The notes under the pieces are model-generated. The model saw only the letters and a program-made list of their open reading frames with translations, searched no databases and was not told the DNA's origin. The translations under genes and the position numbers were made by a program. 32,000 nt of DNA from Paramicrosporidium saccamoebae KSL3 (lineage: Eukaryota; Fungi; Cryptomycota), in contig MTSL01000208.1 in the NCBI GenBank assembly GCA_002794465.1, forward strand, positions 135,793 to 167,792. The letters are read 5' to 3'. Position 1 is the stretch's first letter; each line of letters starts with the position of its first letter. Of this stretch, positions 9,204 to 29,989 are shown one piece after another.

Positions 9204-11103
9204 TTAGTATACCCTCTTGACTGGTGGGACTGGGGCACATTCTGCAGAGTCCAGCGTCTTCATAGTGACTGGTCGATAGTCAATTCGCGTCTTGTTGTCC
9301 TTTTGATTGTTCCATGAAAGCGTATGTTTCATCCAGTTTGCGTCATCACGTTCCTTAAAATCTTCACGAGAGTGGGCACCACGACTCTCCTTGCGATCTC
9401 GGGCAGAATACATGGTCTGCACTGCATTTGTCATTAGATTCTGCAGCTCCAGAGCCTCCACCAGATCAGTGTTCCAAATCAGACTGCGATCAGTCAGACT
9501 AAGATCATTCAGCCGACTGGCAATCTTGTCGATTTGAACGACACCCTCTTCGAGGGATTCCTGCGTGCGGAATACGGCAGCATTTGCCTGCATACACTTT
9601 TGCATCGCCAGACGTACCTCGGCGGTGGGTGAGCCGTCTTTGGAGTTACGAACACGATCAAAATTGCTTAGGGAGGCTTCGCCAGCATCAGCTGATAGGA
9701 CAGGGAGAGGGGTTCCTGGCTTCAAAGTTTCAGCAATATGAAGGGCACAGGCGCGTCCAAATACCACCAGATCCAGCAGCGAATTGGCACCAAGTCGATT
9801 TGCTCCATGCACAGAGACACAGGCAGCCTCGCCGGCAGCATAGAGGCCAGGAACTATCTTGTCCTCGCCCGTCTTGCTGTCATGTGTAATGACTTCTCCA
9901 GTGTAACGTGTGGGAATGCCTCCCATATTGTAATGCACCGTGGGAAGTACAGGAATCGGCTCCTTGGTAACGTCAACACCGGCAAAGATGGCTGCAGTCT
10001 CTGATATTCCAGGCAATCGTTCCTTGAGCACCTCAGCAGGGAGATGGGAAAGCTGTAAGTAAATGTGATCTTTATCGGAGCCACATCCACGTCCCTCCCT
10101 GATTTCGACAGTCATTGAACGTGACACAACATCGCGGGAAGCCAAGTCCTTTGCTGTCGGAGCATATCGTTCCATGAAGCGCTCTCCATTGGCATTTAAT
10201 AGGATCCCACCCTCACCACGACATCCTTCTGTAATTAGACATCCAGCACCGTATATTCCCGTGGGATGGAACTGCACAAATTCCATGTCCTGAAGGGGTA
10301 GTCCTGCTCTCGTCACCATGGCGTTCCCGTCGCCGGTGCAAGTGTGCGCAGAGGTACATGAAAAGTACGCTCGTCCATATCCGCCCGTTGCTAAAACAGT
10401 TTTATGTGCTCGGAAGCGATGAAGGGTGCCGTCCTCCATGCAATATGCCAACACTCCACGACATTCGCCATTCTCCATCAACAGATCCAACGCAAAGTAC
10501 TCTATAAAGAAGCGCGTGTCATGCTTCAATGCCTGTCCGTAAAGAGTATGCAGAATTGAATGTCCTGTCCGATCCGCTACTGCAGCACAGCGATACGCCT
10601 GGCCGCCTTTGCCAAAGTTCAGGGATTGTCCTCCAAAGGCACGTTGATAGATTTTTCCCTCGTCAGTACGGCTGAATGGAACGCCATAGTGCTCCAGTTC
10701 TATAACTGATTGCGGCGCTTCACGGCACATGTAATGGATTGCGTCTTGGTCTCCCAGCCAGTCACTGCCCTTTACCGTATCGAACATGTGCCAGCGCCAG
10801 TCATCGCTTCCCATATTTCCCAATGCCGCGTTAATGCCACCCTACCAATAAGTCGTGGCTTACTCATACCTGGGCAGCGACCGTATGTGAACGGGTAGGG
10901 AACACTTTGCTGATGCAGGCAACATTAAAGCCCGCTTCTGCCAAGCCAAAGGCTGCACGTAGTCCAGCTCCGCCAGCTCCGACGACAACCGCATCAAATG
11001 AGTGATCCACAATAGTGTATGCAGGCTGTCCTGCAAAGGTCCTCTTTGCTATCCGGCCAACAGTGCGACTGAATAGACTAGTAGCGGACTTGAATTGAAT
11101 CAT
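9204..11103 (-). CDS. SDH1: Succinate dehydrogenase flavoprotein subunit, mitochondrial, 623 aa
   Basis: Presequence-like N-terminus and [10 protein letters not shown]. The FAD motif [16 protein letters not shown] is restored by a 28-nt intron at 10842-10869. Also QFHPTG and [13 protein letters not shown]. Confidence 0.98.
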
Positions 11104-16389: not shown

Positions 16390-18130
16390 TTATGGCTTAT
16401 GGAGACGAGGGAACAATTGTTCTGTGCTGCACTGCAGCTTGGAAGTGCTAATGGTATTCTGTGCCCAATTCGGATAATACCGATGTTCATTCTTTACGCC
16501 GATCATGTCCAGGATCTGTGTTGCAGTCTTTGGAATGACTGGCTGGACCATGACACAATATGCCGATACGGCATATGCTACATTACCCAGTAATTCTCCA
16601 ACTGCCTGCCATTGGCCCAATTTTACCATATCCCACGGCTTTTCTTCTGAAAAAATTCGATTTGCTTCGTGCAGTACAGGTTGCAGTCTCTCCAGACCTC
16701 CGCTGAAATTGTGTTCGTCGAACAAGGCGGCACTCTCTGCGCAAATGCTATTAACCTTTTCAGTTAGTGTTGGATCGGGAATTCCCAAGCTGCCGGTCTG
16801 ATGATTGAGGAATTTTGGATTAAAGGCACGCGACACTAGATTCCCGAGTTGATTAACCAATTCCCCATTAACCGTCTTGATAATCTGTTCTCTCGAAAAG
16901 TCGCCATCTGCATCCAGCCGACCGTTCCTCAGCAAATAGTATCGGAGAGTTGATTCGCCGTATTCGGACACTGCATCATGGGGTGAGATGACATTTCCAA
17001 CGCTTTTGGACATTTTCGCCCCATCCATAGTCCAGTGGCCATGGACGACAAGACGGGTGGGCAATGGTAGCCCTGCAGCCATCAGGAACGCTGGCCAGTA
17101 TACAGCATGAAATCTACAAATCAGCTACAGACGGCATCTCAGAATCTTACTTGAAAATATCCTTGCCAACTACGTGGACATTCGGCGTGCGAGCCACATC
17201 GGGATATCCTGTGCAGGTCAAATAGTTAGTAAGGGCATCCAGCCACACATAAACCATCTGACTGTCGTCATCTGGAACTGGAATACCCCATCGCACCGTC
17301 TCTTTCCGTCGACTCACTGAAATATCACCAAATTCCTCGTCCGTCAAGAAGGCATGGAGATCGTTTGTCCGTGCGTGTGGAACCACAGCATTCTTTAGCC
17401 ATTCGATGATGCGGGTGCGATAGGCGGAAAGTCGGAACATGTAATTGCGCTCTTCCACCCATTCCACCCGCTGACCAGTCGTCTTTACAATCTTTCCCGC
17501 GGCAGTGTCAACAAGTTTGTGTTCTGGATAGAATGTCTCCTCTGACACGCAGTACCAACCACTATGTACTCCTGCATAAATATCGCCGTTCTGCACCAAT
17601 CTCCTCCACAACTCATGGACGGCACGTCGATGTGACGGTTCTGTGGTGCGTATGAAGCGGGTTGCCGTGATACCGAGCAGCGGTAACATTTCTCTAAATG
17701 TTTTAGAGACATTATCGCACCAGGTCTGAGGGCTCATGTCCGCTCTCTGTGCTGCCTCATACACCTTCTGGCCGTGCTCGTCAGTCCCCGTGTATAGCTG
17801 TGATATTGCACCATCTCTATTACGGACACTCTCCCAGCGTCTGATTGCATCCGCAAGAATTAAACTGTATGCATGTCCAATATGCGGAGCTGCATTTACA
17901 TAGAAAATTGGTGTAGTCACTGCATGAAAAGTAGTAGTTACGGGGGTCTTGGAAGTATTAGTAGAGTCAAGAGAAGTGAGGTCCGGAGTAGCAGAGTCAA
18001 GAGAAGTGAGGTTCGGAGTAGTAAAGTCCGGAGTAGCAAATTCCAGAGTGGTCACATTCGATGCAATAGTTGCATTCGACAATGCTCTTCTTGTAATCAA
18101 CGCTCTCCACGGACCCAAAGTTTTTTGCAT
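16390..18130 (-). CDS. MSM1: Methionyl-tRNA synthetase, mitochondrial type, 567 aa
   Basis: FYVNAAPHIGH (HIGH), YVWLDAL, GKDIFKFHAVYWPAFL (joined by a 37-nt intron at 17114-17150) and KMSKS. Arg-rich presequence-like start at ATG 18130. Confidence 0.95.
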
Positions 18131-27972: not shown

Positions 27973-28091
27973 TTAGGTCCATAGAGTAGATTACTATAAA
28001 GTTCTTTTTGTCTGCAGTAATTCCTTTTATTTGGTTTACTGGGAGATCTCAAGGTGACTAATTGACGGGAAACCGAGTCGTCTCCACAGCC

Positions 28092-28775
28092 CTACAAGAC
28101 CCCAAAGACCAAAGCAAGCATGATATCGTCGTTAGCCAGCTCTGTTGTCGTGACGAGATTTGCCTTTTGTCCTGGATCGGACATGTTCACATTGAGGCCT
28201 TGTGGAGCAAGAATCGAGTCAATCCGAGTTGCACGCATCTCCAGCTCGTTTTCCAAAAGTTCCGACTCTAGAGCTCCACAATTATCTCCTTCAACCGATG
28301 GCTTTGGATGCCCATAGGCACTCTCCTGAAAAAGTTGTTCCAAATGGAGCTCTTCACTGGCTAGTAACAACGGGATTGATTTGTGAGTAACAAGTAAGAA
28401 TCGTTCCAAATCGAGGCAGAATTCTTCCTGCAGGGCGAGGAGCAATTCATCACCATCGCCTGGGCAACGACATCTGGCCTGGTGGTTTTCAAGACCACAA
28501 GTCACACGATCCTGTTTTGTAAGCATTGCGATCCATTTCATTGTATTCGGTACAGCCTCGTCAACATTAACATTTGTCTTCCCAAACTGTAATATGTACT
28601 CGGAAAGGGTCATTGGACCGAACCCGGGCCTTTTGTGACGAAATACTTTTCGGATCCTGCTGCATAGTCTCTGGAGAAGAATACGGAAGGGGATGCGTGA
28701 CTTTGGAGATTGTTCTGAGCAAGGAGCAGGCGCAATACAAAGGGCACTGACACGGGAGGGCTGCATCGACAACAA
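28092..28775 (-). CDS. Hypothetical protein, about 227 aa; ends uncertain
   Basis: Longest ORF in an otherwise empty ~1.1-kb gap of a gene-dense genome; no recognisable motif. Confidence 0.45.
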   Translation of the reverse strand: MLSMQPSRVSALCIAPAPCSEQSPKSRIPFRILLQRLCSRIRKVFRHKRPGFGPMTLSEYILQFGKTNVNVDEAVPNTMKWIAMLTKQDRVTCGLENHQARCRCPGDGDELLLALQEEFCLDLERFLLVTHKSIPLLLASEELHLEQLFQESAYGHPKPSVEGDNCGALESELLENELEMRATRIDSILAPQGLNVNMSDPGQKANLVTTTELANDDIMLALVFGVL

Positions 28776-28916
28776 GCGCTTGGTCTCCCGTTGCCTAGCA
28801 CCGTCTTATGGTCGTCCCATGGACTGGCACAATGATTGGGTCATCGGTTCCCATGGAGCCCTCCGTAGAGCCGTGTTTGGAGCATTCCCAAGTGGGACGG
28901 ACTCTTGGATGGACTA

Positions 28917-28978
28917 ATTGGCTGGACGATCTGAAGCAATTCTGCTCTGATTGGCCAGAGTCGCGAGTCAATAAATAG
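28917..28978 (+). promoter_or_regulatory. Putative antizyme promoter: two reverse CCAAT boxes and a TATA-like ATAAATAG
   Basis: ATTGG at 28917 and 28950 (33 bp apart); ATAAATAG at 28971-28978, the same octamer as at 5000-5007. Confidence 0.4.
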
Positions 28979-29104
28979 GAGGCGAGTAAGCGAAGCCGAC
29001 GCTAGTTCACGCAACAAGGCACATCCACAGACTCGCTTATTCGCCTATTCGGTTATCCTCTTATCGAACACTAAACCCTCTGACACCAAAACCAAGCCAA
29101 ATCA

Positions 29105-29798
29105 ATGCAGGAATCCTTCCTTTCACGCTCCACCTCGCCAGCGGGGAGTCTACATAGCGTCCGCGCCAAAGTAGTCATCCCGGGCGAGGATTTAGCCATC
29201 CGCTCGACTTGTGCGGCGGTGTGTGTAGTGGACCGTTGTAGCGCGCACCGACGGGAGACGTTTTATTATCACATTGGTAAGAAAAGCGGGTGGTGCTCCT
29301 GATGTCCGCTCGGGGTCGTCGCTGAGTATGGGCGCAGTCGCCCGGCCTTCCTCCCACGAGGCTGCACAGGTCGCTGAATTCCTTAAGGTTTCGGATGACT
29401 TTCGAATGACACTGACCAACGGAGATGTGGATATGGGAGTGGGGGTGGGGGTGGAGGATCGACTGAGAATTGCCCAACCCGTGTCGGTAAACTGGAATGA
29501 CATTATCTTCTATGACGGCTTTACCGTAGATATGGGCATCGAAAAGATATTGCTGGCCAAATTCCCGAGAGCCGACGGCTGGCTGGATGACGACTTTACG
29601 CCGGCAGTGTTGGCTTTGATTGAGCTGGCCGAAGTCATCTTGGACTGCGATCGACTCTATGTCTGTATTGATAGAAATGCCACTGAAATTAACTGTCTCG
29701 TCCGCTCCTTGTTGTATGTTGGATTTTCTGTAGCCGAGTCGCCCTTTTCTTCCCAGTCGGCCGAAAAATACCTGATGCTTTCTTATGAAACTGAATAA
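29105..29798 (+). CDS. OAZ1: Ornithine decarboxylase antizyme, expressed by +1 programmed ribosomal frameshift (230 aa)
   Basis: ORF1 (65 codons) ends ...FYYHIGKKSGWCS at TGG TGC TCC TGA (29291-29302). The +1 frame from 29301 encodes the antizyme domain (AVLALIELAEVILDCDRLYVCIDRN...LVRSLLYVGFS...YLMLSYE). Confidence 0.96.
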
Positions 29799-29989
29799 AA
29801 GCTGTAAACATCGTAGAGGCAGTCTGTCAATCACCTTGTAAAGTTGTAAAAATCGTCGAATCAATTTGTCAATCACCCCATCAAGCTGCAAAATTGATCG
29901 GTCCATCACCCCCTATAATTGCAAAGGAGTCGTGCGTCAATCACCCACAGAAAGCTATAACAATCGTAGAAGCAGTTTGGTAATCATCT
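29799..29989. repeat. Five degenerate tandem units of 33-42 bp between the convergent OAZ and DTWD1 stops
   Basis: Units start at 29799, 29841, 29883, ~29916 and 29952, each with an aagctgtaaa-like head. GTCAATCACC-like cores at 29826, 29868, 29901, 29936 and ~29980. Confidence 0.8.

Follow-up and report, generated by a model that had tools for sequence, protein, structure and literature searches.

Two overlapping open reading frames on the forward strand of the 32-kb stretch of DNA analysed here (the window) raise a simple question: are they two small genes, the remains of a damaged one, or a single gene that can be read from end to end only if the ribosome changes frame on the way? We consider it highly probable (roughly 90%) that the segment 29105-29798 is a single antizyme gene, whose 230-aa product can be made only via a +1 shift at UCC-UGA (29297-29302; Table 1). 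ORF1 terminates in ...GKKSGWCS, and the nucleotides around its UGA stop codon (29285-29305) read AGC GGG TGG TGC TCC TGA TGT. A frame +1 to ORF1 stays open between 29274 and 29798 and overlaps ORF1; when T29300 is skipped, the two frames are joined as ...GWCS-DVRSG.... The first ATG of the ORF2 frame is at 29328, inside the gene, and it is there that the public gene call P0001 (156 aa) begins. In its description of the site the original prediction, which had proposed a frameshifted antizyme at this position, was accurate to the base (ORF1 stop at 29300-29302, ORF2 in +1, GWCS-DVRSG junction); it had also held that ORF2 has no plausible start that would take in ORF1, and the ORF2 frame does indeed have a stop upstream and no ATG before the shift site. 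The exact 12-mer TGGTGCTCCTGA occurs a single time in the 32-kb window, against a chance expectation that we calculate as ~0.004 in 64 kb of two-strand sequence.

Table 1. Location of the features discussed in the text, numbered from the first nucleotide of the window.
Feature	Position	Strand	Details
Antizyme ORF1	29105-29302	+	ATG at 29105; 65 sense codons and UGA stop (29300-29302)
Antizyme ORF2 after the shift	29301-29798	+	165 codons and TAA (29796-29798); ODC_AZ at product residues 135-228
Shift site UCC-UGA-U	29297-29303	+	Module A (UGG-UGC) directly 5'; exact 12 nt at 29291-29302
Frameshift cassette GGT AAG AAA AGC GGG TGG TGC TCC TGA	29276-29302	+	Invariant in 11 loci save for the AGC codon
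Leader motif TTAACCCTCT(G/A)AAC	29072-29085	+	Window reads TAAACCCTCTGACA; 21-25 nt before the ORF1 ATG
Inverted CCAAT box (TGATTGGCC) and TATA-like AATAAATA	28948-28977	+	Promoter-like by sequence resemblance only
MetRS intron	17114-17150	-	37 nt, GTAAGA...CTGAT...TAG; removal restores DIFK/FHAVYWPAF (slash, junction)
SDHA intron	10842-10869	-	28 nt, GTATGA...CTTAT...TAG; removal restores conserved motif starting HTVAAQ/ (slash, junction)

The gene is an ornithine decarboxylase antizyme, since the joined product carries an ODC_AZ domain (Pfam PF02100, 49.5-50.5 bits with a curated cutoff of 24.2) and the AlphaFold2 model of ORF2 (pLDDT 74.5, pTM 0.71) matches human antizyme 1 in the PDB. The same domain scores above the cutoff in all 16 members of the clade alignment, and no other family was matched. 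The best PDB matches that Foldseek returned for the ORF2 model were 4zgy_B (E 1e-5) and 5bwa_B (E 9.5e-5), both of them human antizyme 1 in complexes with ODC, followed by the rat antizyme 1zo0, with TM values of 0.54-0.72 for these matches when normalised on the target. Matches to the solved antizyme 1 chains by sequence only are weak (E about 1e-3 to 2e-2), and the protein is only some 20% identical to AZ1.

Relatives of this gene are known only from metagenome and read-archive assemblies. An indexed protein search recovered 16 of them and an exhaustive search yielded 15 representatives at E<1e-30; scans of metagenome contigs, with a protein profile and with the exact cassette, gave no match from either. 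DNA was obtained for 10 further distinct loci (L001, L003-L006, L008, L010-L012 and L014), which differ in sample and in source (JGI, ENA, Logan), have protein identities of 42-57% and, with the window, make up the 11 loci compared here. The two-ORF layout and the same ORF1 stop are found in the window and in all 10 of these independent assemblies. Across the loci ORF1 starts with an ATG, is 65-84 codons long and ends in TCC TGA, the antizyme ORF2 then following in the +1 frame. The sequence of L014 is cut at its 5' end and offers only the last 43 ORF1 codons and the site, which leaves a complete ORF1 in the window and nine others; in the window and in 9 of 9 complete relatives, ORF1 has its own AUG and a stop that overlaps a +1 ORF2 lacking a conserved start. 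The ORF1 protein is itself conserved in the 10 other loci (M-E-S..SPA.S.HS...CAAVCVVDR.SA.RRETFYYHLGKKSGWCS, followed by the stop), and the window and its relatives have a common gene order, in which the antizyme is followed by a DTW-domain gene on the opposite strand and then by a NAD kinase. The public gene calls in the relatives take ORF2 from arbitrary starts and sometimes give ORF1 as a separate small gene.

These loci bear directly on the most prosaic explanation of the frame break. A single-base break in one assembly looks just like an extra T produced by a sequencing or assembly error, and the gene could also be a decaying one. However, the break occurs at the same codon in the 10 other assemblies, in spite of their diverse origins and their protein divergence, and both ORFs are under purifying selection; on these grounds we regard sequencing error and gene decay as excluded, at a probability that is practically nil.

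Around the shift site the conservation extends to the nucleotides themselves. A 27-nt block, GGTAAGAAA-NNC-GGGTGGTGCTCCTGA, is identical in the 11 loci, with every synonymous position included, and the sole cassette codon that varies is AGC, which is replaced by GCC or ATC in relatives. This cassette consists of module A plus a clade-specific 5' extension. Where a degenerate amino acid is invariant among the loci, it is encoded by a single codon in 6 of 6 columns within the cassette versus 0 of 34 elsewhere in ORF1 and ORF2 (Fisher exact p about 3e-7 by our own calculation); outside the cassette the synonymous sites are saturated across the 11 loci. This demonstrates purifying selection on the RNA sequence around the shift site that goes beyond the constraint on the protein. 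Just 5' of the block the variation is at ORF1 third positions (TTT/TTC, TAT/TAC, CAC/CAA/CAG), and just 3' of it the base after UGA varies between T, C and G among the 11 loci, to give either Asp or Glu, and is the third position of the +1 codon. It follows that the frame under selection switches inside the block.

Could ORF2 nevertheless be expressed on its own? ORF1 would then be a separate uORF or small protein, with ORF2 translated alone from ATG 29328 or by reinitiation; the public call does use this ATG, and some relatives have an ORF2-frame ATG inside ORF1. There is no conserved ATG, however: the window and L001 are without any upstream ATG in the ORF2 frame, and L004 runs on past the site for more than 100 codons without a Met. 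Moreover, conservation of the +1 frame as coding sequence sets in at the stop codon, upstream of 29328. Between the ORF1 stop and the first conserved ORF2 block, the +1 frame has 0 stops in the 618 codons of the 11 loci summed, and the other two frames have 27 and 32 stops in the same stretch. Since no AUG is conserved and the coding conservation runs from the stop codon on, an independent initiation of ORF2 seems very unlikely; it also gives no role to the nucleotide invariance centred on UCC-UGA.

The stop-free +1 frame over these 618 codons, taken with the lack of a conserved AUG, makes splicing unlikely too. In this alternative GTAAGA at 29277 would be a 5' donor, and excision of a 3n+1 intron, such as 29277-29337 (61 nt), would take out the stop and fuse the two ORFs. 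It is true that GTAAGA is the donor hexamer of the genuine 37-nt MetRS intron of the window, that in each locus one or more AGs follow it at a 3n+1 distance and that annotators have used such introns (PMC1874602). Nevertheless, the AGs that could act as acceptors do not occupy homologous positions in the different loci (37-118 nt away), and their frequency is about that of chance (roughly one phase-correct AG per 48 nt by our own estimate), whereas what would be the intron stays open in the +1 frame and is conserved there at the protein level (E/D-V-R-S-G...) in 11 of 11 loci. The 20 nt after GTAAGA are invariant and coincide with the canonical antizyme site, something that an intron does not explain. 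The verified introns of the window are 28 and 37 nt long, and it contains no 3n+1 candidate of 28-40 nt. Finally, the very distant antizymes found in the exhaustive search keep GG[AVI]PD in the ORF2 frame, which is the +1-frame translation of GGU-GNU-CCU-GA, but they lose the GT (as in ARKPGGAPD). We therefore consider it most improbable that splicing joins the ORFs, and return to frameshifting as the preferred reading.

What the window contains is a textbook antizyme recoding site, already known from yeast to humans and here present in a new lineage. All of the known animal and fungal antizymes need +1 frameshifting (Ivanov & Atkins 2007, PMC1874602), and reports of antizyme covered six fungal phyla by 2015, the Blastocladiomycota and Neocallimastigomycota among them (PMC4505036). 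Human AZ1 and the S. pombe antizyme have the same 12 nt, UGG-UGC-UCC-UGA, and a typical antizyme has an ORF1 and ORF2 of ~60 and 160 codons (PMC1874602). The window is like human OAZ1 and S. pombe SPA in this 12-nt site, in its ORF sizes (65/165), in the +1 arrangement, in the ODC_AZ domain and in its fold. With mammals it also has the UGA-U context in common, but within the window's clade the base that follows UGA varies. The S. cerevisiae OAZ1 belongs to the same family and likewise shifts by +1 at the ORF1 stop; that this yeast uses a different site, as the original prediction had stated, is correct, since S. cerevisiae and its relatives have GCG-UGA or CCG-UGA, which in yeast is tied to its tRNA pool (PMC1874602), whereas the window keeps the ancestral UCC-UGA. 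A more remote parallel is the bacterial prfB gene (release factor 2, RF2; named in PMC1874602), also an autoregulatory +1 shift (at CUU-UGA) in which a poorly decoded A-site UGA competes with the shift; the protein is unrelated. Taken together, the domain, the fold, the 10 two-ORF loci, the invariant cassette and the published site bear out the central proposal of an antizyme decoded by a +1 frameshift at UGG-UGC-UCC-UGA.

From the characterised antizymes one can infer how the locus would operate; frameshifting itself, the polyamine control and the action of the product on ODC are all taken from this analogy. A ribosome translating ORF1 would come to hold Ser-tRNA on UCC in the P site with UGA in the A site; it would then skip U29300, read GAU (Asp) next and continue in ORF2. 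The shift and termination at UGA would compete, and polyamines, by homology, would be expected to stimulate the shift. High polyamine levels would lead to more antizyme, which would bind ODC and direct it to the proteasome, and a negative feedback loop would thereby be closed. Among the 20 ORFs (>=150 aa) of the 32-kb window that were scanned, none has an ODC domain, and an intact polyamine circuit, as supposed in the original prediction, is not established by the window.

The locus presents two modest curiosities, an extended invariant 5' block without a 3' structure and a conserved leader motif. With respect to the first, Rfam gave no match in the whole window at the gathering threshold, nor in 28900-29900 at E<=10. 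RNAalifold, applied to the 100 nt after the stop in the 11 loci, produced 4 unsupported pairs and no consensus structure or covariation, and when folded one by one, the sequences 3' of the stop do not exceed their shuffles in stability in any locus of the 11 (z -1.1 to +0.7). Partial conservation 3' of the stop is limited to about 12 nt (GTTCGCTCGGG), which also encode V-R-S-G. As no conserved 3' stimulator was found, the efficiency of the shift may be low, or it may rest on unrecognised elements. A 3' pseudoknot of the vertebrate type was not found in the window; S. pombe and S. cerevisiae are also without an analogous pseudoknot, the 3' stimulator being lineage-specific (PMC1874602).

On the 5' side, the invariant block reaches 15 nt beyond the 12 nt in common with humans (GGUAAGAAA-NNC-GGG), and the ORF1 peptide FYYH(L/I)GKKSGWCS is conserved. 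The stimulatory information in this clade appears to reside 5' of the site, in a 24-nt invariant RNA block after the conserved ORF1 peptide ...ETFYYHLGKKSGWCS. In the agaricomycete antizyme, too, the amino acids of ORF1 immediately preceding module A are conserved (Yordanova et al. 2015, PMC4505036), but FYYH-LGKKSGW-CS here is only loosely similar to YYYSTTFSGGP(G/E)WRF, the nascent-peptide stimulator of agaricomycetes; the shift site and the peptide differ, and the 3' stacked stem-loops of basidiomycetes are absent here. A speculative possibility, one that we would put at well below even odds, is that the Rozella-related clade practises a 3'-structure-free frameshifting that depends on GGUAAGAAA-NNC-GGG as a new 5' stimulator, possibly along with FYYH(L/I)GKK as a nascent peptide, and that the leader UUAACCCUCU(G/A)AAC is a second, hitherto undescribed point at which antizyme expression is controlled. 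In prfB the 5' stimulator is a Shine-Dalgarno-like sequence that pairs with 16S rRNA, and the sensor is RF2, not polyamines.

Another candidate on the 5' side was a hairpin, UACCACCU(G)/(C)GGGUGGUG, located 45 nt ahead of the ORF1 stop. Folding predicts it as the MFE structure in 7 of the 11 loci (L003, L004, L005, L006, L008, L011 and L012), and in L004 and L005 an AGC-to-GCC change lengthens it (z -2.5 to -3, lowest in L004). We have rejected this hairpin as a conserved element because it is missing in the window (as it is in L001, L010 and L014), because there are no compensatory changes and because the ribosome would enclose its 3' arm when the shift takes place.

As to the organism that harbors this gene, it is tentatively an early-diverging fungus near the Rozellomycota. 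This placement is based on SDHA (9204-10823, minus strand), whose best named matches are Rozella allomycis (83% identity), chytrids and zoopagomycetes and whose single-gene NJ tree puts Rozella together with the window and its metagenomic relatives (84% bootstrap), and on the distance of the nearest named antizyme, that of Basidiobolus ranarum, which matches at only E 1e-15. Other genes of the window are of the housekeeping kind: a G3BP-like NTF2+RRM protein, BING4/UTP7, a bHLH factor, a UBR1-type N-recognin, an organellar-type MetRS, a PPR protein, NmrA, SDE2, Nopp140/SRP40, the DTW protein and the NAD kinase. The window is compact, being roughly two-thirds coding by our own estimate, and introns of 28-37 nt are unusual for fungi. 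The original prediction had spoken of a highly reduced genome, but this is not established by a compact window with tiny introns, given that its housekeeping genes are quite ordinary.

The value of the locus is mainly one of annotation. The antizyme gene and its recoding event are invisible in the public calls for these genomes, since these either consist of ORF2 alone, begun at an arbitrary position, or break the locus up into two small, unrelated ORFs. Every public call annotates ORF2 only or splits the gene, just as had been anticipated of standard pipelines, and the problem has been described before (PMC1874602). Beyond this, the locus extends the range of the ancestral design, UCC-UGA with module A, to an early-diverging lineage of fungi close to Rozella, which fits the published view that this design is older than the split between fungi and animals.

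The second curiosity, the leader motif, lies in upstream DNA that is otherwise unalignable; its AACCCTCT is invariant in 11 of 11 loci, and the motif is found once per locus. It is probably situated at the transcription start or in the 5' UTR, since CCAAT-like and TATA-like boxes are present ~100-125 nt further upstream. Boxes of the TGATTGG and TATAAA type are found at a similar relative place upstream in several related loci. Two other interpretations of the motif were discarded: it is not the end of a uORF, there being no in-frame upstream AUG and none that is conserved, nor is it the branch point of a 5'-UTR intron, as the sequence from the motif to the ATG contains no AG in L003 and L008.

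There are also differences between the window and its relatives in the vicinity of the gene and within it. The gap between the Nopp140-like gene and the antizyme (27973-29104) measures 1.1 kb, versus about 320 nt in L001, and it contains, on the minus strand, a 227-aa ORF (28092-28775) with no Pfam match. In ORF2 itself, an 18-nt in-frame insertion (~29433-29455, GGAGTGGGGGTGGGGGTGG) is absent from all of the related loci; it codes for a G-V-G-V-G-V repeat and falls in the linker that precedes ODC_AZ, where conservation is poor.
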